A stretch of DNA of 64,000 bases from Entomortierella parvispora E1425 (lineage: Eukaryota; Fungi; Mortierellomycota). Positions 8,590 to 63,367 of this stretch are shown one piece after another (the stretch's first letter is position 1; each line of letters begins with the position of its first letter). Location of the stretch: NCBI GenBank assembly GCA_020891255.1, contig BQFW01000005.1, positions 1,426,001 to 1,490,000 on the forward strand, written 5' to 3'. The position numbers were made by a program, and so were the translations under genes. The notes beneath the pieces were generated by a model. That model was not told the DNA's origin. It made no database searches and saw only the letters and a program-made list of their open reading frames with translations.

Positions 8590-9655
8590 TGACGATACAA
8601 TTTATTACAATAAATCTTGACGTAGAAGGGCTCCCAGCATCCACTGGTGTTTGGAGTAAGGTACCATTCAAGAGTCGGCGGATCTATTCCGAAATATGAG
8701 GTGATGTTGTTCCCTCTGCGAATGCAAGTAAGAGTAGAGCAGGCACAAGTCTGGCTGTTTTCAAAATGTTGCTGTGGGCCAACCAGTTCCAGTTATTGTC
8801 CATAAAGTCAAATCCCTTGTCAGCACAAAGAACGGGACGCCTCGTGGATAGGCTGAAACGGATTTCGGATATGCTAAGGACTGGACCGCGAAAGGGCGAC
8901 GAACTTGAAAGTGATACCATTACCACAAATGACCATCGGAGCGCCAAGAGTGTTATGACAGTGGACATTCAGAATGATTCGAAGGCAAGACTTGGTCAAA
9001 GTGGCCGTGTCAGCCTCTGCCCCCGGATGAGGGCCACTCAGATGGGCAATCATATTTCATGAAGTGCATCTGTTTCTGAGTAGAATATGTCAGGTTTGGC
9101 GTTTCAAACACAAAAAAAAAAGATCTGCTTTTTGAGCGTGAAGTTTAGCAAAGGACAGGATGTTATAAGGAGAGGAGAAGAACTCCAACACCACAATGGA
9201 GATAGCGCAATGTCCAGAAACTTCACTGTGATGGTTGCACTTGGACCAGAATTAAAGTCGTGATTATAGGAGAGACGGTGCGCTGGACCTTGCCATTTCC
9301 GTGTTGCGGCGTGAGAGCGCTTGGGATTGAGGGTGGATCTGGTGCAGTTAAGTTATATAGCTATGTATAAATGGCCGACAGAAAGGTGCCGACAAATAAG
9401 CGTGATTGAGAGCCATGACGACAAAAGACTAACAGACTGTCAATCCCCCCTTATGACTTTGCCATGAAATTGGGTTGTGATTACTTCGCCTTGCAGCACG
9501 GATGAGGGTTCTGTGCGCCTGACCGTTCCTTCCTTTTTTCTCACACTCGCAGCCTTTCTTTCTTTACCCCCTTTCACCTGAGGTCTTTATTTCTGCATTG
9601 ACTTTTCTTCTTTTGATCTTGCTCCAGAAGGCCCCCGAGCTTTTAAAAACACACA

Positions 9656-10249
9656 ATGGCATTCAACGCCCCCCGGAGCGCAGCTTTATTACGTCTCTCT
9701 GTCACTAAAACGTGGTCATGGCACAAGAATTCCCCAAGAACCATCAACACAAAATCGACGCTCTGGAAAAAGATGCGCCAACAGGTGCTGCAGCGAGACG
9801 ACTGTACTTGCCGCTTCTGTGGTGTGCGGTCTGGAAAATATATGGTCTGCGACCACATCGATGGCAACCCCTCTCATAACGATCTTTCCAATCTCGGCAT
9901 CAACTGCCCAATGTGTGACTCTGTACGTCACTGTGGCCTAGCTGGCATCCACAACCTTTTGTCTCTGGGTATCTCGAAGATGCCCCAAAAGGATATTAAT
10001 CTCAAGACCCTGCAGCTCTTCAGCGAGACCCACAAAGTTCCTTTGTTCTCTGAGGTGGACAGCAGTGCTGTTATCGTTGCAGATCGCACTATTGGCTACG
10101 CCAACATACTGCTGAAACTCAGCGATGACTTTGATTATACTTCAAAATGCGATTGCAGTTCTATCCCCCACGACTACAGCATGCACAAGGGCTTTTTTAA
10201 AGCCGATTCTACCACTCTGCTCAACCGGATTCTTGATAATCGATTTTAA
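9656..10249 (+). CDS. Intronless HNH endonuclease, DotN/IcmJ-like
   Basis: W..MRQQVLQRDDCTCRFCG...VCDHIDGNPSHNDLSNLGINCPMCDSVRH is the zinc-binding HNH signature (RDxxxCxxCG...H.DG...N...N...CxxC). Confidence 0.85.
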   Translation: MAFNAPRSAALLRLSVTKTWSWHKNSPRTINTKSTLWKKMRQQVLQRDDCTCRFCGVRSGKYMVCDHIDGNPSHNDLSNLGINCPMCDSVRHCGLAGIHNLLSLGISKMPQKDINLKTLQLFSETHKVPLFSEVDSSAVIVADRTIGYANILLKLSDDFDYTSKCDCSSIPHDYSMHKGFFKADSTTLLNRILDNRF

Positions 10250-10723
10250 CCATAGTGGTATGCGGTATTATATGTCAAAAGACAATAAAACCCACGAAAC
10301 TCGTGGTTCAAACTGGGTATAAAATACCAAAGCGACTGCTCAAGGATAGGATGTTTCCTTCTCTCTCTCGTGGTTGATCCACTGTTTTGGTTGTTCACAT
10401 CCTTTTTCTTTGGTTATAATTGCTTCATTCCACCAACTGTTTTCAGAAGTAAAGAGATACTTCGAGTCGTTTTCCGTTGGAGATCGCAGTCCTCAAGTTC
10501 TCCCTCACCCTCGTCGTTGTCAGACTCACCCTCCAATTCATCTCTATCATCTTCAACAACCTCGAAGACGACTATCCAGCACACCTCCGCTACTACAACC
10601 ATTACATCCTTGATCTAGACAGTACCGCCATCTCAGCTTCATCGACACCGTATAGCCGCCCCTTTCTTGACCTTCACAGCAAAAACACTTCCATCACCTT
10701 TTCCAACTCCTGACATCCCTACG

Positions 10724-12640
10724 ATGAGTGAAGACATCACAGCTGATACCAGCGAGGTGTACATGTACGCGACTCAAGTAGAGACCGAAACAGCTCCCCA
10801 ACCAACCACGGCCACTACGGTGGCGCCACTACTTTCCCTTCATCGGCTAACGGTGGCGCCACGCAGCAAACAATACCAGACCAATGAGGGGGCAATTGAC
10901 TGCATGGTGCTGGCCCCATTTAAAAATATAGGACCGAGGTAAAACTGCTACCACTGTAACGCGTTGATTGACCCTTCCGCTGTCCTTCTTTTGATTTCCT
11001 GTTTTAGCGTGGGGTGTGTAAGAGTCCTATAAACCTGGTAGCGTTGTTCTAGACGTATGTAAAGTTGGTGGCGCTGTGATGGATCCCATAAAAAAAGGGA
11101 TCTTCTCTTTTTTTTTTGTGGCGCAAGGCCACATCTTGGCACCTTTGATGGTGTAATGATCATTCAAGTGTGGTTTTCTGATAGCCGCGTCAGGAATCCG
11201 GTATCTTGGCAAGATCTCGAGCACTATGACATCAAAGTTCATCCCCCATCCATCATTCATCTCCATGACGGTCAATTCCCTTGACCTGTGTGGCAATGTC
11301 GCTCATGGGTGCTGGATACCCTCCAGGAACGTATACGGATCTTTGGAGATGTTTATTTTTTACATGCGGGTACTGAAAAAAGATCATGTCGCTATTCCAT
11401 TGTTCCATTGCGTGAAACGTTGACTGCTGACATTCTTGCCCAGGAGCTTGATACACCTGGTACATACATATCGCCACTGTCGCCGTTATCATCACCCAGG
11501 AGGGACAAGAAACACTCCTCATGGACATGTTGTCAGTTGCCAACAGGCAGCAATCACAGCACGCCAGGATTTGGATGATGTCACTGACCGATGCCCGACC
11601 ATTCACTAATCAAACAACCTTTTGTCTGCATCTTTTCCAACTCTTTGGTTAACAAGCACTTTCCTTTCTTTTCGATCCGCCAACCCTCATAGTTGACCCA
11701 ATTCAACCCTCCAGTACGACAGAGTCTGGACCCCGTACTGACGCGAGGACATCTCCCCAAGGACAGCAAAGTCTAAACACTGGAAGAGTTCTACAGGTTA
11801 GGACAGAACCTTAATTGGATGATGATATTGACAACGAGGGCAACGATAATCAGGTCTCCGCGATCGGAGGAAGGTCCTCTACGTCAATAGTGGATAATGG
11901 CATGTCGAATTCCCCTTGTCATAACGGCCCTTACCGGAGTTCAACGCCCGAGGCAAGGCCTTATCCTGCAGCTGCCTCTAATATTTCGTCAGATCTACCT
12001 CTTTCAAGCAGGACGGCGGCTCATGAATCTCTATAAACATAGTCTCGGAGACGGTAAGCTTCTCATTCCTTGCTTTCACAAAGTGGGTTGGATGTGCTCC
12101 TTGGGAGAGCAACTGAAAAGTTGAGAAAGATGCGATCAAAGCTAGTTGATGACCCCGAGGGTTTTCAGGAGGAGTTATCTCAGCTACTCATCACCATCGC
12201 TGGTGTTCAAAGGTGGCCTCTGAAGTTATAACCAGAGATTGATGCCCAATCCAGAGCCATTGGTTGTATGGGAACTACTCTAACGCAAGCACAAGGAGTG
12301 CAGAAGCTCTTGAAGGAGACGCTTGGTCTTCAAGAACGGCTTCATGATGAGTCTACGGATCTTGAAACAATGTTGGCAATGGAGGAATGTTGCTATCGCA
12401 GCGGCCCGTTCAAAATGAGGACAAGGAGAAAATTGATGTGAAGCCTTCCCAGCTTCCTGAAGAACAGCGGGGCGGAGTTTTGGGCCCAAAGGAGACTAGA
12501 GAGACAGAGGCGTTTCACGCGGGTCCTGGTGCAAACCTGCACACTGAAAACCGTTGCCCAACAAAACCAGGGCGCATTGACTCTCAACCCCAACCAATAA
12601 GGGATAACAAGAATGTCGCTGTCACGGACAGGCATGGGTA
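10724..12640 (+). pseudogene. Possible decayed multi-exon gene of unknown family
   Basis: ATG at 10724 with a GTAAAA donor near 10939. Long near-open frames at about 11130-11578 and 11815-12640 are interrupted by single stops. No family recognised. Confidence 0.3.
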
Positions 12641-13123
12641 AGGGGGGATGTAAAAAGGAATAAATGGCAGACTTTGTGAGTTGCAGACTGGGAAATTATG
12701 AAGTCGCGTCTGTGGGTTTTACGAATGAGCCAGCATGAAGACTCGCCGTCATCCTCGATCAAAAAAAAAAAAAAAAAAAAAAAAAATGGAGATCGCTCGT
12801 ACAGACATCCAAACTTCAGATGACAATTACTTCTCTCATAGACAAGACAGATACGCATCCATTGGTGCATCTTTTCCTTCTTTGATATGCCATCAATCTT
12901 TGAAAACATGAGAATATAGATGTGAAAACCCACATCGCTATTAGCAATTCAAAATGAGAGTAAATTTGTCAGGAATTGACGCATGCAAATCATCTGCTCC
13001 AATTGATGCCTTTATTCTGACTCTGATTCTTGAAAGAGTTCGAAATAAAGATGAAGGTGTTTGATGGTTGTGCATAAAGAGAGCAATCCAGCAGACTTCA
13101 CCGAAAGACGTAGACAGCATGCG

Positions 13124-15080
13124 CTACTCCTTAAGTACTCGAGTCGGCGTACTGAAGCCAGGGCGCGTAAAGTTCTGCCCTTGGTCCCCTTTGGCGTGAC
13201 TTGCCGAGATCTCCGAGATCGTGTTTTCAAGTCGCTTTTGGACATGCAGTAAAACATTGATTGTTGTAGCCAGCACACCGAAGTCGAAATGGGATCTAGG
13301 AGTATAAATGGGTGCGATCGATCGGAGCGCATAAATGCCCCTAGCTTCCAACTTCATGGCGTACAAGCGTCCCTCGGTACCTAACGATTAGGTGGGACCA
13401 GGTATTATGATTTTGAGGCGCAGCAGACTACGCCCATCTATCAAAAGTGGACATGCACTTACCCACGATGTGGACACAGATAACTTCCGACGTACTGACG
13501 TCGATTCCTTGCCTGCTTATATCATCAACGGAGTCCTTCATCATACCTGCCAACTTCTCGAAATCATCCTTAACAACTGATGCACCTTTTAGTACTTCCT
13601 TTGCCTCCATCTAGAAGAGATATCAGACGATTCCACGTAACGCTGTTCTCAGTATGAAGTAGGCCGACGACCCACGCTGCCCTCATCAAGGCCCTTCTTC
13701 CTGTTTTGGTTTGGCGGGAACGCTTGATCCCTATAGTGAAAATCGTTGATGGTTACTTTCACATACCTTTCAGTGAACAGTTTGGCGGATAATTTTCTGT
13801 ACGTACCATCGACCAACACTTCCTTTCACATTGCAAATATATGCCTTAAGAAAGGGGTAGGGGTTGAAGACATGACTTCGCAACTCATGTTCGTTGAATG
13901 GTGCAGAGACCACAAAAAGTCATCCTCAACCAATCCCGTCAACACCTTTTTTATGCTGGTGTCTCCGTCCCAATTCAAGAGGAGGTTTTCCGCTCCCTGG
14001 TAACTCAGGCTACTGAGTTGAAGAGCTAGGTTTTGCAACTCCAACATCACAACATCATCAACTCCCTTCTCGATCTGGACAGAAGTAATAGCTCGCCACT
14101 CCTCAAGTCCAACGGCATCGAATAACGTGCTGTCCGTATCGCTTTGTTCAAAGAGATGTATATGGCCCCCAGCTCTACCAAACGGACAAATGAAAAGACG
14201 GCGTCAGGTAATTGCTTCAATGGAGAGGACCTTTTAGAACCCACTTACAAGTTACGTACAATCTTTCAACCGAGCTTGTGAGGGGAACTACTCGTTGAGC
14301 GGCATCGACTACACGTTTGCGGTATTTCTACAATGTGGGGGCTAGATCCTGATCATTGACAAGCCACGGCATCCGCAAAACCTCTGAGCCATCAGTGCTT
14401 CCATGTCCCGTAAGATAGTAGATATCCTTCGACAGTGACCGTGAACGTTCGCATTCTGACATAGTTGATGTTTGTGATAGTAGGTCATCATCTCTGTCAT
14501 CCAGGCGTGTATTGCCTCCTTCTGACTGCAGATCGTCGTCTCCGGCATCTGGGCCAACATCGATTCCTTTTGACACCAAGGCAATGTCAGAAGCCTCCTG
14601 AGTTCCATTTATCCGTGCATGACAGACATTTAATCCACATGATCAATCTTTCATCTCCCTCCTCTGGAGACGCATTACTCTCGTGAGCTTTAGCATCCAG
14701 GACGCCGTTGTCGTTCTCACAACGGTATTTTCTATCATAAGCAAAAAGTCGCTCACTTTAGTCATCCAAATAAAGAATTGCACCCAAGACGTTTCGGTCG
14801 GCAGATCGGAGAGGGTGTTTTCGAACGTTAATGCGGGCAGTGTCCTCGATATCACTGGCGGTCTCAGCATCATCCCGCTCCCGCCAAAATGCTCCTAGGC
14901 CATTTCCAGGTATTTTCCAGCTGGCCGGCAGCCGTTTGCCCTGATCAGTCAAGAAGGACTTTCAAGGACTTGTCCCACTGTTTATGCAGCCTTTGCTTGT
15001 TAGACAATTTCGGGTCGAAGGTTTTGAAGTAATCAACAGTGGTATATTGCCAGGGGCTGTCTGGGTACAGTAAAATGACT
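13124..15080 (-). pseudogene. Decayed Crinkler-type/Mucoromycota PD-(D/E)xK restriction-endonuclease-like gene
   Basis: Fragments read GRRP(D)FILRT...*YLF*MEAKEV...KDDFEKLAGMMKDSVD...HIVG, then an intron (GTAAGT...CTAAT...TAG), then TEGRLYAMKLEARGIYALRSIAPIYTPRSHFD...RPGFSTP. There are multiple stops and frameshifts, including one in the PD motif. Confidence 0.65.
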
Positions 15081-15305
15081 TCTTCGCAGTCGCTAACAAG
15101 AACGGATGTGCTTGACCTCTTTGCCTTTTCTCGATTTCGGTTTTGGCTTTGCTGTAGACTTCATTTTTGATTTCTGTACCATTGGGTCAAGGGTGGACGA
15201 TGCAAGCATGACGCGATTTCCGCGATTTCATGGTAAGACTGTAGCATTTACGTTATATAAATACCCAGACGCAATGCAATGTACTTTTTCTGGAATAAAA
15301 TATAG

Positions 15306-15677
15306 TTAAAACCTTGATCGAATATCCGGGAAATGCTCGTCAAGTAGCGCAGTTATTCGTTGAATATTGGCATTCCTCAAGAACATCGAGATAGTCCTCT
15401 TGAGGCGTTCGTCGTTAGTGATGAACATCAACAAAACGAGCCCGTTAATAACGACAGGTTCTCTGTGGTCGTCCGTTGGGAGATCTTCCGTCGTGAGCTT
15501 TATACATTGGAACAAACTGATTCCATCCCTGTCCCATGCTGTGACACGAGCTAAACTGTAGAGTGTTGGAAACGTTTCGTAAATCTCTCTCGCCAAAGAG
15601 ATGTCACCTCGTTGGACTTCTGAAACGTAGTCGACAGAAAGTCTCTTGGACAACTCCACAAATTTCCTGGCACTCAT
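15306..15677 (-). CDS. Small intronless orphan protein (123 aa), divergent from the thioredoxin
   Basis: Clean ATG-to-stop ORF with globular-like composition. No motif recognised. Confidence 0.5.
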   Translation of the reverse strand: MSARKFVELSKRLSVDYVSEVQRGDISLAREIYETFPTLYSLARVTAWDRDGISLFQCIKLTTEDLPTDDHREPVVINGLVLLMFITNDERLKRTISMFLRNANIQRITALLDEHFPDIRSRF

Positions 15678-48607: not shown

Positions 48608-50564
48608 TTAGTACTCTCGATCCTTTTGAAAAAGACTTTGGTTCGAAGAATCGTCGAGCTCGACAGCGTCGAACTTGAGTCTCGTGGAATAAACGTTCCC
48701 TTTGATCGTTGTTTCGGCCCTGATTTCACTCAGTCCAAAATAGAACTTAACTATGAAATGAACCTACAAAAACAATGTTATATCTCAGTGAATAACGTTT
48801 ATCGAAACCCTGCGACATGATCATCAGCTAATATCTTTGTTACCTCTCGGCCGGGTGGGTCTGATGTCGTGAAAGGGTTGGGGATCAATATATGGGCGGA
48901 TGGGCTCAGTTTGGTAACGTATCGAGGTGGATCTCCATCGATTGAGTAGATTGAGACTTGCATGTCTCCGGTTGGTATGCCACCTTGATGTGTGAAATAG
49001 TAAGCACCATCGATACACTCGTCTACTTTGACGACCGTGCCCTTCTTGACAATGGTGCTGAACCGATCTCTACATTTTACCCCGTCGACTCTGCGTACCA
49101 TCAACTCTGTTGGATCAACACCTACTTCAAAGTTCCTATTCACCTCTACACCATAGCAGCGACGAGTTGCTCGCGCAGTGACTTTCCCTGGGCTCAATGC
49201 TGCATACACGGCGCCGAAAACCACTGCAATCTCGGGTCTATTTGGTGCTGAGATTGTTTTGATGCTATTTCCAAATTCCTGCATCACGCGTTCCAGAAGA
49301 TAAGTCGATGATCCAAACCCTCCTACCATAAAGATGGCGGAACAGTCCTTGGCCTTGTCAAGTTGGCCTTGAATCAGCTCTAGGACTTGCTCGACTACCG
49401 GGTCAAAAACTAGTTTCTTCAATTCAACTGCTGTAAAGCGCATGACGTCTTCGTCGATTCCAATAGCATCTGGAAACTCAATATCCTCGAAGAATGAATT
49501 CCAGGGAAGTTCGAGATAGAGATCGTCCACGCCATTAAATTGTGGCTTGAGGGCAAATGCAAACTTCTCGACCAAATTGGAAATAACGTCGTCGTCATTC
49601 CGAACACTGGCGCCTTGCTCTGTGAACTTCTGTGCCAGAAGTTTGCCGAAATTTTGGTCTATGAGCATAGATCCACAAGAAGCACCATGGCCTTTGGTAA
49701 CCTCTGAGAGACTTCTGCCTTTGGCTGTCTCGGAAATATCGTAAACGATAAGATCAACAGTGCCACCACCAGCATCACAAATTAAAAACCTGTCACCATG
49801 CTTGAGATCGTACTCCTTGCAGGACCGCTCACAGTATAGCGCCGCCGCCTCGGGTTCCGTTACGAGCATCAAACGATCCATGTGATCGCTTGTCTTGACA
49901 AGGCCAGCGCGAATAGCTGCCTGTCTCATGGTGTCCTTGGCCTTATCAGACCACATGGCAGGAACTGTCAGGCAATATCGAAAACTATCGCGGGTGAAAC
50001 GTTTTCCGAGCTCCTGCTCTATCTTGCCCGCGACGTACTCATGCAGGGCCCTCAGAAAATCTGAAATCGCATCAGGGACAGAAATGGGACTTGACCATGG
50101 CGGCAGATCAGCACTTTCGTCCAACTGAGTCTTGTACTTGTAGAGTAGAAAGCACTCTGATCCTGATCGTCCTTTCTTTAATTTTGAATCACAACCCCAA
50201 GACTCCATCTTGTATTTGTTATTGGTCTTCTTGTAAAGGCTGACTGTGGGTGTTTTCGCGTAGTACATGAGCTGCTTTGGCCTGTATATTTGGTTATGAA
50301 CACATGTATAAGCGTGTAAATGAGATGGCCTGATCATAGTCTATCATATTTCGCACGATACAACTCCCTACCACTCTGATATCAATTTGGGAACTTTATC
50401 TTGTGGAGCGTAAGCATATGCGCATCCTCTATGTCATTAACAGCGCATCAATAACTGCACGTCTCTGGGGCCACAGATTTAACAGGCGCTTACGAGAACG
50501 TGGTCCCAAAGTCAATGGCGACTACCACTGGAAACTCATCAAGGTCGAGGGTGCTTAGAGGCAT
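48608..50564 (-). CDS. HSPA12-like atypical Hsp70 (actin-like ATPase)
   Basis: VVVAIDFGTTFS|GCAYA, YCLTVPAMWSDKAK..MRQAA..AGL, EPEAAALYC, ICDAGGGTVDL, CGS..ID, VGGFGSSTYL, and final exon FYFGLSEIRAE (acceptor about 48764, stop 48608). Three introns. Confidence 0.9.
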
Positions 50565-51072
50565 GGTCTGCGAATGGTGCTGGCTTGGGGACGATGTCAA
50601 GATGGAGCTGTTTAGTTCAAGTGATAGCAACGAGAGGCGTGAAGAAAAAAATGAGTGTACGGCCCAGAGGCTGCAAAAAACAAAGAGCTGGTTACGTTGA
50701 CGTTAGGGGTTAGAGAATGGATGCATGCGGCTGTGTTTAGCATATAGGGGCTATGCAATGCGAATTTCGCCCCTATTTCAAGGTGCCTCTGTGGTGAGAC
50801 CTTTGGGCTGCTGTTGAACCGTCACACTTTTAGACATCGTGCAACAGGGTCCATTGTTCCTCACCTTTCCACATCGCCTTTCAAATACAGCTCCTGGCAG
50901 CACTGACAGCACAACAGCAATCGCTATTCCGTGCACGACCCAAACTCCCCGACCTCAACTTAACGCTGTGGTGTAGCTTTTAGAGTAACCTCTGTTTTAA
51001 CAAACATCTCTCTTTTGTCACCCTTCGGCGCTTTCCGTTAACTTATACTATACTTCTGTTATCAAAAGATAC

Positions 51073-52422
51073 ATGCCCTTTCTTTCGCTTTCATCGATGC
51101 TCTTTCGGAGTGATCCTAAGCCTCCCAAAATTCCCCCGTCTACTGTGGAAGTTAACTTCAGTTTGGCAGATAACACTTCCTGTGACAGTCAAGGTCCTCG
51201 AACAAGTGACAACGCAGGTAGTTAACCGATGCTTCATTGGATTGCCGTATTGCAAGCAAGATGCAAACTTTTAACTTATAATGCTGACTTTATACCAGCC
51301 GAAGATGCAATGGAGATAGATCAAGACAGCATTGTTTCTAATACGGCAGTGAAGGAGGATAATGCGGTCAATGGGCCAGGAGAAAAGACCTCTTCGAAAC
51401 CCAATGTATGGTCCGATGGGGTCCATCAGGCCCTCAGAGGACAACTAACAGGAGCACAATATAAAATTCAGGAGCTGACCAAAATTAGCCAGAGTCAAGG
51501 CGACTTCATTGTCAAACTCCAAAACGACTTGAACCATTTGTCAAGTAATCGCCGATATCTCCAAGGAGCATATTCCGAACTTGAACATAATCACAATGAG
51601 TTGAAGCGCAAGCATGAAACTGTGCTCAGGAAATACGAGGACCTTGATAGGAAGTATATGGACATTGCAAGATCTCTGCAAGTTACTGGAGATGACCGAT
51701 CCACTATCAACAAACAGCTGGAGGCCATATACTCGGCGATTGAAACCATGGTCATAAGATTAAGAGGCAAAGCCTCGGTCAATTTGAACAGGGCCGTTGC
51801 CATAGAACAGCTCCGGGACTTTGGCTTACTTCAAGATTTTCCAATCCAAGAAGATCAACTAGAATCGTTTCATCTGAACCTCTTGATGGAGTGTGCTCTG
51901 ATGTGCACTTTAAGCAACCATCTATTCTCGCGGCCCTTGCAGTGTATTTTTGACGGAAGCCAAGAGTTTGAGACGATTTGCGAATTGGTGGAACAGCGGG
52001 GCAGTAAAGCTTCGGATCGTTGGAGACAAGAATTATGCATCCTAATTGCTCAAGATGGAGAGGGCATGGCACATAGAAAAGAAATCGAGGTCAGCAATGT
52101 CAAAGCGGAACTCGAACATTGGGTTTCGAGTGTTTACGGAAATGTTGACGCGGCTATAACGAACAAGATTCAAGAGCTTTGTAGCTCAGCGTTTGACCTA
52201 TCCTATGCTTTGCTTGGAATGGAGTCGAGAGTCTACCCTGTTTGGCCCGATATTGGCTCACAATTCAACAACAACGAGATGAAGAAGTCTACTCGATCGA
52301 ATCCTGAGGGCTTGGTGTCAATGGTGGTATTTCCATCCTTTCGGGATAGTGAAGACAGATTTTATTGCAAGTCAAAGGTCTGGCTGTGGGAAAAGGAAGA
52401 GACGCACACTTCTGAGCAATAA
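51073..52422 (+). CDS. Coiled-coil protein with a C-terminal GrpE/MIEAP-like domain, head-to-head with the HSPA12-like gene
   Basis: join(51073..51217,51299..52422), 422 aa. A long heptad region is followed by a helical domain ending LCSSAFDLSYAL...YPVWP..GSQFNNNEM...VSMVVFPSF...SKVWL. The fold call is inference. Confidence 0.75.
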
Positions 52423-53169
52423 GAATTTGAATTTTATTAAATATGTCTACGAACGCATTGCAAGCAGAACAAAGCTTCAAACGTCAGAAAAAAAATGAAC
52501 GCGACCTTTCTCGTAAAGATCTTTACACGTGATGTGATCAATGTAGTCACGTGCTGATGTACCTGCGCAGTTGCGCCTCTTTGTCCCTTGCCCATGGACC
52601 CACCATCCAGGCCCAGAGTGAAACAGGCCAATGGCACAGACGCATGGTCCTTGACCTGTCAACACAACCGCCATCACAACAGGTGATAGGACAGGACAGG
52701 GTGATCGTTGAGCTGTCAAATTGCAATTTCACACTCCCCTCTTTTTCACACACTCCCGCTTCGCACACAGCTCCCCTCCTTATCAGATTTTGTTTTTGTT
52801 TGCCTGTTGGCCTGTTTCTGCCACACTCGCTCCGCCCTCGCCCTCCCTCCTTCCTCTTTCTCTCCTGTCATCCCCTCGCCTGTCTCGTCTGATCTCTTTG
52901 TCCTTTCTCCTTGTCCCTTTGCTCCCCCCCTGGTTGTCCGTAACCGTTGGATTCATTCATTCTTCCTTTTGCATCTCTTCTCTGCTTGTCTCCTCCCTCT
53001 CTGCTCTGGACTGCAGGCAGTCCTTTCTCCCTTCCCCCCTCCCCCCTTGCTCAAACACGGTAAGTCTTGCTACAGCCTCATCCCACAATACACAACGCCC
53101 TCCAACACTGAACTAATTTTACCCTGTGGTTCATCCCATTCTCATCTCAACAGACCAAGTGACACCACA

Positions 53170-56100
53170 ATGACAACTGTGGACGATCCAACAGGGTCGT
53201 TGCTGCACTCATACGACGATGACGAAGAAACCCTTTACCTTGGCAGCCAGCAGAACGGCCACTCACAAACGCCAGACACCCCCTTGCCAGCAGCATCTGC
53301 CACAGCGACCATGCCTGTGGTAGGCATGACCTGCATGTCGTGTGTCAATGCCATCACCTCAGTGCTTAGTTCGCAACCTGGGATCCAAAACGTGCTCGTC
53401 TCGCTCAGAGACAAGCAGGCCACCGTTACCTACAGCCCGTCGACCATCACGCCCGCGCAGATCAAAGACCATATCGAAGACTGTGGATTCGATGTTCCTG
53501 TCGACACTGACGCACTGCAGCCAACGTCTGCAGGCACTCCCGAGCCAGCTGTGTCCCCGAGGACACCCATGCCCATCACTGCAACCACAGTAACTCCAGT
53601 CAGAGCCACAACACCACCCGTTTCTCAATTGACCAGCTCCTGCCCCGCAAATACCCTCACAGCGCAGCTCTCTATCCAGGGCATGACCTGTGCTTCCTGT
53701 GTCGCTTCAATCGAGCGAGCCATGCAAGGAACTCCCGGTCTCGTCTCCATCAAGGTCGCGCTTCTAGCGGAACGAGCCACTGTCGAATATATCCCTTCAC
53801 TGACCTCGCCAAAAGACCTGGCCGACCTTATTGACGACATTGGATTCGAAGCCTCGCCCATTCAGGAAAACCGCCCAAACCAGGTGGACCTCCAGGTCTT
53901 TGGAATGACCTGTGCCAGCTGTGTCCATTCGATTGAGACGGAGCTGCGAAAGATGCCTGGAATCCTTTCCGCTAACGTAAGCCTAACTCTCCAAGGGGCC
54001 AAAGTCGAGTATGATTCACAAGTGGTCGGAGTACGGGACATTGTGGAGCGAATTGAGGACATGGGATTCGATGCCTTGTTGGCAGAGCGATCCCAGAATG
54101 CACAAGTGGAATCACTGAGCCGAACCAAAGAGATTACGGAATGGCGCAACACCCTAAAGACCAGTGTGATCTTGGCCATCCCTGTTTTTTTGATCTCGAT
54201 GGTCATGCCAATGTTTGCCTGGGGTCGAGCTATCTACGACACCCAATTGTTTTTCCATCTGGCCTTTGGTGATGTTTTGGCCGGTATTCTGACCATCCCG
54301 GTGCAATTTGGTGTCGGACGACGATTCATTATCAGTGCTTACAAGGCCCTCAAGCACGGCGTTGCCACTATGGATGTCCTTATCTCCCTTGGAACTCTGT
54401 CGGCGTTTACGTTCTCCGTGTTCTCGATGCTCTACACTGTCTTTTCGCCTGACCATCCCAAAGCCTCCGTCTTTTTTGACACGTCCAGCATGTTGATCAC
54501 ATTTGTGACCATTGGTCGTTATCTCGAAAACATGGCCAAAGGTCAGACCTCGGTAGCGCTTTCCAAGCTTATGTGCCTGACTCCACCCACTTGCACGATC
54601 TATTTACGAGATCCTGCTACTGGCGAACGCGTGTCAGAGAAGGAGATCCCTTCCGAATTGGTACAGAAAGGTGACTGGATCAAGGTTGTGCCTGGAGACA
54701 AAATCCCTACTGATGGTCTGGTTATTTCTGGACAGTCGACCGTGGACGAGAGTATGGTTACAGGCGAGGCAGAATCTATTTTCAAAGGTCCTGGATCAAC
54801 AGTCATTGGCGGCACCGTGAACGCTCTGGGCACCTTTGATATGGAGGCCACCCGGGTGGGATCAGAGACGACTCTTGCTCAGATTGTGCAATTGGTGGAG
54901 GACGCGCAGACTTCCAAGGCGCCTATTCAGGCCTATGCCGACAAAATTGCAGGTGTATTTGTGCCAACCGTCATTCTGATTGCATTGATGACCTTTGTGG
55001 GCTGGATGATCATCTCGCACACCCTTCAACAAGCCGATCTTCCTACCATGTTTTTGATGGAGCCCTCAAAGTTCGTCGCATGCTTGAAGCTGTGCATCTC
55101 TGTCATTGTTGTCGCGTGCCCTTGTGCCCTTGGACTCTCAACCCCCACTGCGGTAATGGTCGGTACCGGTGTTGGAGCGCAGAATGGTATCCTTATCAAG
55201 AGCGCCGTTGCACTGGAAGAAGCTCATAAGATCACCATGGTGGTCTTCGACAAGACTGGAACGCTGACCCATGGAAAGCTGCAGGTAGCGGAGTGGAGTG
55301 TGAAGCCCTCGGCGTCATCCGCCGGTACTTCGGCGTTGGGATCGCTGAACGACAACGATTTCTATACCATCGTTGGTGCAGCCGAGTCTGCGTCGGAGCA
55401 CCCTCTTGGTCGCGCCATCGGACTTTTTGCAAAGGAAAAACTTGGCACAGAGCAGTTCCAAGCAACCGTCACAGACTTTTCATCTAAGCCAGGACAGGGC
55501 ATTGAGTGCTCTGTAGCGACCAAGTCCATGACAAGCCCTTGCAAAGTTATGATTGGTAACACCTCCTGGCTCAAGGAACGACAGGTTGAGCTGCCTACTC
55601 AGTTAGCTTCCGAGAAGGCAGAGCAGGAGAAGCGAGGCCGTACAACCGTTCTCGTGGCGATGAACAACAATTACGTTGGGTGGATTGCACTTTCTGATAC
55701 CATTAAGAAGGAAGCGGCACGGACAGTCTCCAGACTTCAGCAGATGGGCATTCAGGTCGCCATGGTCACTGGTGATCAGCCCTTGGTCGCGCAAGTTATG
55801 GCCAATGAGTGTGGCATTCAGCAGGTCCATGCTGGCGTCTCACCTGCAGGCAAGACGGCCATTGTTTCCAGGCTGCAAAATGAAGGACACTGTGTGGCCA
55901 TGATTGGAGATGGTATCAATGACTCCCCTGCATTGGCTCAGAGTAACCTCGGTATTGCTCTGAAGTCTGGTACCGATATTGCTATGGAAGCTGCTGATAT
56001 GGTTCTTATGCGTGGTGATCTGACGGACGTGGTCGCGGCTATGGAACTCTGTCGAGTGATTTTCAGGAGAATCCGCTATAATTTCGCTTGGGCCTGTATC

Positions 56101-56448
56101 TACAATGTGTTGGGCGTGCCTCTGGCCATGGGCTTGTTCCTTCCTTGGGGCTATCACATCCACCCCATGATGGCCGGTCTGATGATGGCCTTCTCGAGTG
56201 TTAGTGTTGTTTGTTCAAGTCTGTTGTTGAAACGATGGAAGAAACCCCATCTCCGGGACGTGACACAGCAGGAGCGCGAGGCCATTTTGCGCAAGGAACT
56301 GCAAAAGAAGAAAGAAGCGACAATCCGAGCCCACTGGCGAATGCAGTTGGGTGGTCAAAAGTCCAGCAAGCCCCTGTCCAGAGGAAGCGGCTATGTCCCT
56401 GTTGGATCGGAGGATGTGGATGAGACTGAGATGGACCAGTTTGTGTAG
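53170..56448 (+). CDS. CCC2: Copper-transporting P1B-type ATPase
   Basis: Three GMTCxxC metal-binding domains, TGE, CPC, DKTGT, SEHPLG, GDGIND, YN and MxxSS. ATG 53170 follows a 5'-UTR intron (GTAAGT at 53060). Confidence 0.97.
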   Translation: MTTVDDPTGSLLHSYDDDEETLYLGSQQNGHSQTPDTPLPAASATATMPVVGMTCMSCVNAITSVLSSQPGIQNVLVSLRDKQATVTYSPSTITPAQIKDHIEDCGFDVPVDTDALQPTSAGTPEPAVSPRTPMPITATTVTPVRATTPPVSQLTSSCPANTLTAQLSIQGMTCASCVASIERAMQGTPGLVSIKVALLAERATVEYIPSLTSPKDLADLIDDIGFEASPIQENRPNQVDLQVFGMTCASCVHSIETELRKMPGILSANVSLTLQGAKVEYDSQVVGVRDIVERIEDMGFDALLAERSQNAQVESLSRTKEITEWRNTLKTSVILAIPVFLISMVMPMFAWGRAIYDTQLFFHLAFGDVLAGILTIPVQFGVGRRFIISAYKALKHGVATMDVLISLGTLSAFTFSVFSMLYTVFSPDHPKASVFFDTSSMLITFVTIGRYLENMAKGQTSVALSKLMCLTPPTCTIYLRDPATGERVSEKEIPSELVQKGDWIKVVPGDKIPTDGLVISGQSTVDESMVTGEAESIFKGPGSTVIGGTVNALGTFDMEATRVGSETTLAQIVQLVEDAQTSKAPIQAYADKIAGVFVPTVILIALMTFVGWMIISHTLQQADLPTMFLMEPSKFVACLKLCISVIVVACPCALGLSTPTAVMVGTGVGAQNGILIKSAVALEEAHKITMVVFDKTGTLTHGKLQVAEWSVKPSASSAGTSALGSLNDNDFYTIVGAAESASEHPLGRAIGLFAKEKLGTEQFQATVTDFSSKPGQGIECSVATKSMTSPCKVMIGNTSWLKERQVELPTQLASEKAEQEKRGRTTVLVAMNNNYVGWIALSDTIKKEAARTVSRLQQMGIQVAMVTGDQPLVAQVMANECGIQQVHAGVSPAGKTAIVSRLQNEGHCVAMIGDGINDSPALAQSNLGIALKSGTDIAMEAADMVLMRGDLTDVVAAMELCRVIFRRIRYNFAWACIYNVLGVPLAMGLFLPWGYHIHPMMAGLMMAFSSVSVVCSSLLLKRWKKPHLRDVTQQEREAILRKELQKKKEATIRAHWRMQLGGQKSSKPLSRGSGYVPVGSEDVDETEMDQFV

Positions 56449-62709: not shown

Positions 62710-63256
62710 TTTTTTTTTTTTTTTTTTTATTGACAAGGGGCCTATAGAAATGTGACCTAAGCCACTGTTTCAATCGCATGCTTCTGCATCCAGAGCCGTA
62801 CGCGACCGTTGCGTCGCTCTCCTCTTTTTAAAAAGAGAAGAACCCGAGGTCTAGGTCGCCTCACGACAATAAAAATTTACAACTTCCCATCCTTTCCATC
62901 ACTGCTGGTCGTCGCCGACCTAGGTATGTGTCCAGCAGAATTATATCCGCTTCGATGGCTTCGCCCGTAAAACCGGGGCAAGTGTTGTTCGTGTGGTTGT
63001 CTAGTAATTGTCCGCATTCGCACTCATCCTCCGCGGGTGGTGCTCCGACCCAGGATCGCCATGGGTTGGCTTGCGCTCCTTGTTGTCTCGGTGGCAGTGT
63101 TCTCTTCATCTTCTTGGTGATTGCTTGTTCTTTTTCCATTGCAATCTGGCTATTGCAACGGTCCAGCCAGACTGCCTCTCGAATCCCTTCCTCGAGAGCG
63201 CGGCAAAAACGGTGGACGAGGTTTTGGGCCGTGGTGATGTTGGTCTTAAAGAGCTT
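62710..63256 (-). mobile_element. 3' end of a non-LTR retrotransposon (LINE): ORF2 C-terminus, 3' UTR and poly(A) tail
   Basis: The frame is open up to 63256: KLFKTNITTAQNLVHRFCRALEEGIREAVWLDRCNSQIAMEKEQAITKKMKR... resembles the (I/V)WxxRC...E...(G)I motif ending fungal LINE ORF2. A 19-nt poly(A) lies at 62710-62728. Confidence 0.7.
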
Positions 63257-63367
63257 TGTAACAGGAATACGGTGACATCACGCGATGTGTACCTACAAAA
63301 GCTAGAAACTTGCAATATAATAAAACTCACTTCTTGTCTCCACTCCACCCTCGATACTCCTATTGCA

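Follow-up and report, generated by a model that had tools for sequence, protein, structure and literature searches.

The atypical Hsp70-like gene and the coiled-coil gene diverging from each other in the window analysed here (the whole 64-kb stretch of Entomortierella parvispora DNA) constitute a conserved, co-inherited module, whose duplication and relocation have carried both genes along, head to head, as a single unit. The 15 loci examined in the close subfamily, from Entomortierella, Mortierella, Linnemannia, Podila, and Actinomortierella, all carry the pair head to head, and this divergent arrangement is far beyond chance. Because the pair stays together and relocates as one block, it points to a dedicated helper for the HSPA12-type class of ATPases. 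The two products probably work together, and the chances are about even that this conserved Mortierellaceae module comprises an HSPA12-type ATPase and its dedicated cofactor or adaptor, acting in one complex.

A preliminary description of this DNA had proposed an atypical Hsp70 gene and a 422-aa coiled-coil gene diverging from a 508-bp region, and the gene models rebuilt from the sequence agree with it in coordinates, lengths, and orientation (Table 1). The Hsp70-like gene comprises four exons (50564-50494, 50428-50372, 50281-48844, and 48763-48608) with GT..AG introns, and its product is 100% identical to EMPS_03925 (database protein P0150). The partner gene is split into two exons (51073-51217 and 51299-52422) by an intron at 51218-51298; its GenBank model is erroneous, being fused with the downstream Cu-ATPase. 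The same description had placed the pair among housekeeping genes, and the neighbours are indeed ordinary: copper P-type ATPase, SAC3/GANP, an RlmN-like gene of the radical-SAM type, ataxin-10-like, Exo_endo_phos, and glutaredoxin.

Table 1. Features of the divergent gene pair, in window coordinates.
Feature	Position	Strand	Details
HSPA12-type Hsp70-like ATPase gene	48608..50564	minus	573 aa, splice model and translation; EMPS_03925 of Entomortierella parvispora
Adenosine-binding motif VGGFGSS	49306..49326	minus	residues 362-368, alignment to DnaK NBD
Catalytic-Glu motif TEPEAAAL and phosphate-2 motif DAGGGTVD	49753..49860	minus	residues 184-191 and 212-219
Phosphate-1 motif DFGTT	50499..50513	minus	residues 18-22, from translation
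Divergent intergenic region	50565..51072		508 bp between both start codons; presumed bidirectional promoter
Partner gene	51073..52422	plus	422 aa, splice model; stop included
Predicted disordered N-terminal region	51073..51414, intron included	plus	pLDDT <50, exon-2 residues 1-38
Long single helix, predicted coiled-coil "stalk"	51415..51678	plus	exon-2 residues 39-126, pLDDT about 64-89
Conserved all-helical domain	51688..52215	plus	exon-2 residues 130-305, helices at pLDDT 80-97
Small C-terminal beta domain, "wing"	52234..52389	plus	exon-2 residues 312-363, six short strands in model

The HSPA12-type identity initially assigned to the Hsp70-like product holds, as its closest named relatives, by database and Atlas similarity, are HSPA12 proteins, and its Atlas neighbours include the HSPA12A cluster ("Hsp70 member 12A.1") at 0.96. 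The Pfam HSP70 match (35 bits, for a cut-off of 20.6) covers the nucleotide-binding domain (NBD) only. All four ATPase motifs are intact and match those of the DnaK NBD: TEPEAAAL and DAGGGTVD are conserved and aligned with 1dkg_D by phmmer, and DFGTT is the counterpart of the DnaK IDLGTT motif. The Pfam and DnaK alignments end at profile position 369 and DnaK residue 376, respectively, and neither gives a substrate-binding domain (SBD) match in the remaining ~170 residues, which contain no canonical SBD or lid; in relatives, this C-terminal part is occupied by DUF8340. The atypical animal Hsp70s HSPA12A/B are likewise NBD-type proteins without a canonical lid, and likewise subject to lineage-specific expansion: the HSPA12-like family has undergone a huge expansion (549 matches in the database search), and HSPA12, whose function is stated as unknown, is greatly expanded in bivalves (PMC13580251). 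The fungal clade differs from HSPA12A/B by its own C-terminal domain and by a fixed genomic partner in one subclade, whereas HSPA12 has no known cofactor.

The partner belongs to no Pfam or NCBIfam family, these searches returning generic coiled-coil noise only, and its 29 stand-alone homologues (41-66% identity) come from the Mortierellaceae only. In its AlphaFold2 model (pLDDT 81), the predicted disordered N-terminal region corresponds to a part of the orthologue alignment that is weakly conserved and variable in length. The stalk differs in length among orthologues on the heptad scale and matches generic coiled coils only; this predicted helix of ~88 residues probably dimerises as a coiled coil. 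The helical domain (~175 aa, about eight helices) contains the motifs LQVTxDDRSTI and RWRQELC, with invariant or nearly invariant columns, while the wing carries a conserved GMES...P.F...KxKVW, the columns M228, P246, F248, and V261 being conserved across the wide partner family. Two profile searches, one of 1.84 billion representatives, extended this family to Mucoromycota and reached no protein annotated as GrpE, MIEAP, or GIL1.

Eight of the 15 paired loci were verified on DNA (the window and L001-L007), five were taken from consecutive locus tags on one contig each (BGZ74_005417/18, EC991_005632/33, BGZ96_009489/90, BGZ95_003993/94, and BGX24_003386/87), and the last two were assigned from both genes belonging to one species and to contigs of identical length. 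One of the verified loci, L002 (EMPS_04137/04138), is a second pair in the same E. parvispora genome, on another contig. Orientation is strictly kept across loci, with spacers of 0.5-1.5 kb, a threefold spread, and no gene besides the pair, in the 64-kb window or in any locus flank, is common to different loci. The Linnemannia loci L001 and L007 have in common one sharp-edged 5.6-kb block, of 88.7% identity, which is exactly the pair: it stops about 280 bp and 130 bp past the two stop codons, and the DNA beyond is unrelated. Recurring adjacency or fusion of the two families had been envisaged from the window; the adjacency is borne out, but no fusion was found, and the ten long partner-family members (549-909 aa) contain no Hsp70 or other enzymatic domain.

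The phylogenies lead in the same direction. In a tree of 110 HSPA12-like sequences, the 11 Hsp70-like proteins whose partner is known all belong to one 26-sequence clade (support 100, stem 0.38), and this single ATPase clade corresponds to a single partner clade. The trees of both proteins are compatible, with the same copies long-branched in both and the same faster copy in three out of three sister pairs, the evolutionary rate of the partner being about 2.5 times that of the ATPase; both genes are intact in every copy examined. The distribution is patchy, since the pair occurs in E. parvispora while the listed matches from E. beljakovae, E. chlamydospora, and E. lignicola stand outside the paired clades. 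In the wider partner family (Lobosporangium, whose unpaired relative has 41% identity, a divergent Linnemannia paralogue, Calcarisporiella, and Umbelopsis), no Hsp70-like gene is present within 7 kb. As these relatives adjoin unrelated genes, a linked Hsp70-like gene is unnecessary for the partner domain.

The C-terminus of the partner had been likened to GrpE, a comparison that stands weakly, for the modelled order of structural elements but not for sequence, where no signal was obtained, and which reaches structure scores below the trust lines. Bacterial genomes contain grpE-dnaK operons, and Mge1/GrpEL1 are the mitochondrial GrpE-type exchange factors. Such a factor homodimerises via its stalk, binds the Hsp70 NBD in an asymmetric 2:1 complex, and speeds up ADP release. 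GrpE-like factors consist of a disordered N-terminus, a stalk helix of about 70 aa, a short helical domain, and a C-terminal beta-wing (PMC12987570). Here, the gene linked to that of an Hsp70-fold ATPase encodes a protein in which a disordered N-terminus, stalk, helical domain, and beta wing are predicted in the same order, GrpE chains align with this partner almost end to end (146/151 and 155/161 residues), and its wing is collinear with the GrpE beta-wing in VIA alignments. Foldseek of the partner model against the PDB places GrpE at ranks 1-3, at E 0.13-0.29, under the trust line. With the full model, VIA yields seven GrpE entries at Z 4.5-6.3 (rmsd 5.5-19 Å; trust line Z 8). The wide whole-model VIA search was swamped by generic long helices; the C-terminal domain was, therefore, folded separately, and its model gives GrpE at Z 4.7-5.5, below the same line. 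Among PDB families other than coiled coils, GrpE comes first for the partner, with entries from five species, all of them scoring below the trust lines.

Nevertheless, sequence similarity to GrpE is nil. The GrpE family (PF01025) is not matched in Pfam or NCBIfam searches of the partner, even at E 1-10, GrpE is missing from a PDB profile search with the partner family, up to E 10, and the family profiles reach hhalign probabilities of 0.2% and 3.4% with E. coli GrpE. In addition, the middle domain of the partner measures ~175 aa, in contrast to the short helical hairpin of GrpE, the window ATPase is devoid of the SBD, which GrpE also contacts, and the two genes diverge from each other in a eukaryotic genome instead of forming an operon. 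That the partner works as a GrpE-style nucleotide-exchange factor of the ATPase, as its modelled architecture might suggest, is the most specific form of the cofactor reading and an unlikely one, although to be kept in view.

The other resemblance proposed for the C-terminus, to MIEAP (SPATA18, PF16026), persists as a weak echo by fold, language-model features, and sub-threshold Pfam matches, but the Pfam gathering score is not reached. In MIEAP, similarly, a helical domain comes after the coiled coil, and the C-terminal domain is small and of beta type. With predicted models on both sides, the Atlas fold match has TM 0.53/0.30 (0.53 by query) over 193 residues (rmsd 4.2) for the C-terminal domain model, and TM 0.41/0.47 for the full model; the language-model features score is 0.82. 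At the gathering score, PF16026 does not match the window partner, and three of 38 family members match sub-threshold (best E 0.021). The best named fold match is the C-terminal domain of plant GIL1/IRKI (TM 0.59 by query and 0.38-0.47 by target, 208-213 residues), without any Pfam match of the partner to GIL1_IRKI_C or DUF641 (PF24994, PF04859), and many fungal proteins present the fold of the partner at TM 0.66-0.78. GIL1/IRKI differ from it as plant proteins from another biological context, without a sequence link, and we know of no ATPase linkage for them. Unlike the window partner, MIEAP has no link to Hsp70-type ATPases in the literature found, and no publication joining HSPA12 with MIEAP, or Mortierella with HSPA12, was retrieved.

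The linkage could also be explained by co-regulation only, a shared bidirectional promoter driving two genes whose proteins make no contact and serve either a common response or unrelated processes. The strictly kept divergent arrangement, with its spacers of 0.5-1.5 kb, would suit this explanation, as would the absence of fusions and the fact that the wider partner family functions without an adjacent Hsp70-like gene. However, the seven intergenic regions compared (the window and six other loci) have no conserved sequence element, not even a common k-mer of 8 or more bases, their length varies threefold, and the clade-to-clade match and parallel branch lengths fit functional coupling better, without proving it. 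We regard co-regulation only as unlikely, while giving it some weight. Heat-shock control of the pair was considered and rejected, as no heat-shock element (HSE) was found in 50565-51072, the 3-unit HSE is absent from all seven spacers, and 2-unit matches amount to two only. The absent fusions, promoter motif, and HSE also count against the cofactor reading, as do the unpaired relatives of the partner and the low GrpE scores. A slightly less probable explanation makes the partner a client: the ATPase would spend ATP on assembling, disassembling, or keeping soluble the coiled-coil oligomers or condensates of the partner, which would be the working part, a MIEAP/GIL1-like scaffold. The nearest named folds and the many fungal proteins of similar fold agree with this, together with the sub-threshold MIEAP matches; a long stretch of disorder at the N-terminus and a coiled coil that varies are typical of self-assembling scaffolds, and members of the fold also function elsewhere without a linked ATPase. 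Yet the window ATPase has no recognisable substrate-binding domain, the MIEAP/GIL1 similarities are modest and the profile searches reached no sequence link, and the partner oligomers that it calls for are putative.

Neutral hitch-hiking, in which chance ancestral neighbours were co-copied by small segmental duplications or relocations without selection for linkage, is improbable. Any block duplication copies neighbours, carrying them along regardless of interaction, which counts against the cofactor reading, and the pairing is limited to one subfamily of each protein family. On the other hand, across at least five genera, and between paralogues too, the linkage outlasted all outer neighbours, the block common to L001 and L007 ends just outside both genes on each side, and no copy examined has lost the integrity of either gene. 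Even less probable, in our view, is an accessory or conflict module, either carried by a mobile element that escaped recognition or serving as a fast-evolving unit of defence or non-self recognition. Its multi-copy, patchy distribution, insertion contexts that differ even between 89%-identical copies, the faster evolution of the partner, and the expansion of the HSPA12-like family, as in bivalves, are all compatible with such a module. Moreover, prokaryotic GTPase-centred conflict systems contain Hsp70 and GrpE genes, including Hsp70 without a peptide-binding domain (Kaur et al. 2020, PMC7159879), and so set a precedent in which an Hsp70 outside housekeeping adjoins its exchange factor. These systems nevertheless rely on a bona fide GrpE, and their bacterial operons also encode GTPases and effectors; such extra components are absent at the pair loci, where no effector-type domain was found. 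The mobile-element version was rejected: no direct or inverted repeats bracket the window pair, the L001/L007 block edges have no inverted ends or duplications, terminal repeats and target-site duplication are absent, and no transposase or integrase is among the called neighbours of the pair loci. For the defence or non-self role suggested in the preliminary description, no direct evidence was obtained, the PADLOC scan being empty apart from coiled-coil noise; EAD9 matches of the partner family (E 0.03-0.12) were dismissed as noise.

Under the reading of a dedicated cofactor or adaptor, the ATPase, which has an Hsp70 nucleotide-binding domain with intact motifs and no canonical SBD or lid, would act in one complex with the partner. 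The partner would bind the ATPase via its conserved C-terminal half, and may either tune the nucleotide cycle or direct the ATPase to its site of action. HSPA12-type Hsp70s are widespread, and expanded in bivalves and Mortierellaceae, without a known mechanism or cofactor (PMC13580251). As the partner resembles MIEAP and GIL1/IRKI by its fold and GrpE by its architecture, a confirmed joint action would hint at what several uncharacterised families of eukaryotes do. By far the boldest extension, and a long shot, is that MIEAP/GIL1-like stalk-and-wing proteins would be extremely diverged GrpE-type cofactors, dedicated to HSPA12-type ATPases, whose partners have long been missing. In that case, the head-to-head pair of Mortierellaceae would be the one place where the genome still records this relationship, providing a testable function for HSPA12 proteins and MIEAP-like domains in animals, plants, and fungi. 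Even without joint action, the pair would still be a clear case of two eukaryotic genes forming a unit that moves as a block.

Head-to-head pairing of the ATPase gene, which encodes an HSPA12-type Hsp70-like protein, with the gene of its coiled-coil stalk-and-wing partner is real, as the preliminary description had it, and recurs in other genomes. The coordinates and lengths it assigned to both genes proved exact when the gene models were rebuilt. A partner homologue lies head-to-head with an ATPase homologue in 7/7 fetched loci (L001-L007), including L005, in which the contig terminates within the ATPase gene, exon 2 of the latter being still visible. Five further pairs carry consecutive locus tags on the same contig, and for two more both genes were found in the same species, on contigs of equal size; in total, with the window included, pairing was found at 15/15 loci from five genera. 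A. ambigua has two copies of the pair (L004, L005), as does E. parvispora, with one in the window and one on another contig (L002, EMPS_04137/04138). Fusion of the two families, which had also been envisaged, was not found.

Coordinates of the paired genes, their spacer and the block shared by two Linnemannia loci
Feature	Position	Strand	Remarks
ATPase gene	exons 50564-50494, 50428-50372, 50281-48844, 48763-48608	minus	573 aa, four exons, rebuilt by hand
Partner gene	exons 51073-51217, 51299-52422	plus	422 aa, two exons, rebuilt by hand
Divergent spacer between start codons	50565-51072		508 bp
Shared 5.6-kb block, exactly the gene pair	L001 3247-8762; L007 3257-8798		sharp edges, unrelated DNA outside

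Evidence for the pairing is sharpest in L001 (L. elongata) and L007 (L. gamsii MAG), which have this single block in common, at 88.7% identity, from about 280 bp beyond the ATPase stop to about 130 bp beyond the partner stop. As the block is confined to the pair and all DNA outside is unrelated, the two genes travelled together, by copying or by relocation, as a discrete unit. Neither terminal repeats nor duplications mark the edges of the block, and no mobile-element signatures were found there or at the window pair. No flank genes are common to different loci, and no locus flank holds relatives of other genes in the 64-kb window. In L007, the 7 kb that follow the partner (8657-15657) are free of called genes. 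The window (63249-63367) and L002 (9119-9265) have two short stretches of 41 and 59 nt in common (90-93% identical); tRNA was ruled out, and a small dispersed repeat is probable.

A tree of 110 HSPA12-like proteins gathers every ATPase known to have a partner (11) in one long-stemmed clade of 26 (support 100). Across 11 matched pairs, the ATPase and partner trees are compatible, and the partner evolves at about 2.5 times the rate of the ATPase. The second E. parvispora copy is a long outlier in both trees, and in three sister pairs the same copy evolves faster for both proteins. No Hsp70-like gene was found within 7 kb of the partner relatives examined outside the paired subfamily (Lobosporangium, at 41% identity, a divergent Linnemannia paralogue, Calcarisporiella, and Umbelopsis); the linkage thus belongs to one clade per family, and not to the fold in general. 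The gene pair is co-inherited, co-relocating, and clade-specific.

The main exon of the ATPase matches EMPS_03925 of Entomortierella parvispora at 100% identity. The protein exceeds the Pfam HSP70 threshold (35 bits vs. 20.6), limited to profile positions 125-369. Since its phosphate-1, catalytic-Glu, phosphate-2, and adenosine motifs are intact and DnaK alignments end where the nucleotide-binding domain ends, it looks, by its sequence, like an active ATPase consisting of this domain only, without canonical substrate-binding domain and lid. Mortierellaceae have a very large HSPA12-like complement (549 proteins at E <= 1e-60), partly in tandem arrays, which recalls the bivalve HSPA12 expansion. 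Among the listed homologues P0150-P0269, at least 13 matches lie on one 42,290-bp contig of Entomortierella beljakovae; in E. lignicola, with locus tags 006647, 006649, 006651, and 006652, other genes may be interleaved.

The partner has no fitting Pfam, NCBIfam, or PADLOC family, these scans giving only generic coiled-coil noise. A word-based search retrieved 29 homologues (41-66% identity), all from Mortierellaceae and several per genome. In their alignment the N-terminus varies, the coiled coil changes in length on the scale of heptads, and a C-terminal stretch of ~270 aa is strongly conserved. Exhaustive profile searching extended the family to 120 cluster representatives; its spread, as given by 8 of the ten representatives looked up, covers Mortierellomycotina (Lobosporangium, Lunasporangiospora, Haplosporangium/Podila, Entomortierella, Linnemannia) and Mucoromycotina (Calcarisporiella, Umbelopsis, Bifiguratus). 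Mucorales joined in a second profile search, and in both searches no member had Pfam domains over the conserved part.

The preliminary description had likened the partner to GrpE, the nucleotide-exchange factor of DnaK, and to MIEAP. By sequence, the GrpE likeness does not hold: no family scan matched GrpE, even at E 10, a PDB profile search returned nothing, and hhalign against E. coli GrpE gave probabilities of 0.2-3.4%. Predicted structure may favor it. In the AlphaFold2 model (pLDDT 80.8), the N-terminus is disordered and is followed by a single helix of 88 residues, a helical domain of ~175 residues, and a C-terminal beta domain of ~55 residues with six strands. A recent review describes the same order of parts for GrpE-like factors (PMC12987570), although GrpE has a far smaller middle domain. 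The top three Foldseek matches in the PDB are GrpEL1 and T. thermophilus GrpE (E 0.13-0.29). An independent search of the C-terminal model against 48,161 chains ranked three GrpE representatives among its first 17 (Z 4.7-5.5), and the first 19 places of the realigned Foldseek list include seven GrpE entries, drawn from five species (Z 4.5-6.3), all under the Z of 8 below which, by the tool's own calibration, a match may be a common arrangement. These seven are collinear and cover >90% of each GrpE chain, with the rmsd of GrpE matches at 5.5-19 A. The resemblance of architecture is possibly real, and shows neither homology nor function.

The closest predicted structures belong to unnamed fungal families (TM 0.66-0.78). 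In one of these, a Basidiomycota family (ESM Atlas cluster, 628 aa, TM 0.69 by query), a fold like the partner's C-terminal domain mostly follows an MMR_HSR1 GTPase, another NTPase association of this fold. Plant GIL1/IRKI C-terminal domains follow at TM 0.59. MIEAP matches at TM 0.53, ranks first among named families by language-model features (0.82), and is matched sub-threshold by 3/38 family members; the MIEAP remark is therefore a fair lead, albeit unproven.

We put at roughly even odds that the two products assemble into a complex, where the partner, probably dimeric, would serve the ATPase as cofactor or adaptor; a GrpE-style exchange role, the most specific variant of this, is unlikely. 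The arrangement could also reflect only a promoter common to both genes; the seven spacers compared hold neither heat-shock elements nor shared promoter words. The partner might be a client of the ATPase, to be read beside the enzyme's apparent want of a canonical substrate-binding domain, and neutral hitch-hiking of two genes, to be set beside the discrete block, is a further, less likely alternative. Bacterial conflict systems, in which an Hsp70 occurs with bona fide GrpE, are a loose precedent for the pair (PMC7159879), which may, with still lower probability, be an accessory or conflict module; PADLOC gave no defence-family matches. A literature search found no HSPA12-MIEAP or Mortierella-HSPA12 link, and a 2026 review states HSPA12 function as unknown (PMC13580251). 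What emerges is a candidate stalk-and-wing cofactor linked to an Hsp70-type ATPase; the linkage is solid and directly testable.

Around the pair lie ordinary genes (Cu P-type ATPase, SAC3/GANP, RlmN-like radical SAM, ataxin-10-like, Exo_endo_phos, and glutaredoxin). In the GenBank model, the partner gene is for the most part fused to the downstream Cu-ATPase, giving a 1,477-aa product (window 51097-56448; 4117-9468 in L012, the record covering this locus), which is why the first homologue search lacked an identical partner protein. Partner orthologues are all stand-alone and end at one shared C-terminal motif, and a CT-rich spacer of ~750 bp separates the partner stop from the likely Cu-ATPase start; we therefore argue that the merged model is an annotation artefact. 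Upstream of that start, the strongly C/T-rich stretch at 52500-53170 (GC skew about -0.3) lends the ORF a long extension (from 52708 on) that is spurious; the stretch probably serves as promoter or 5' UTR.
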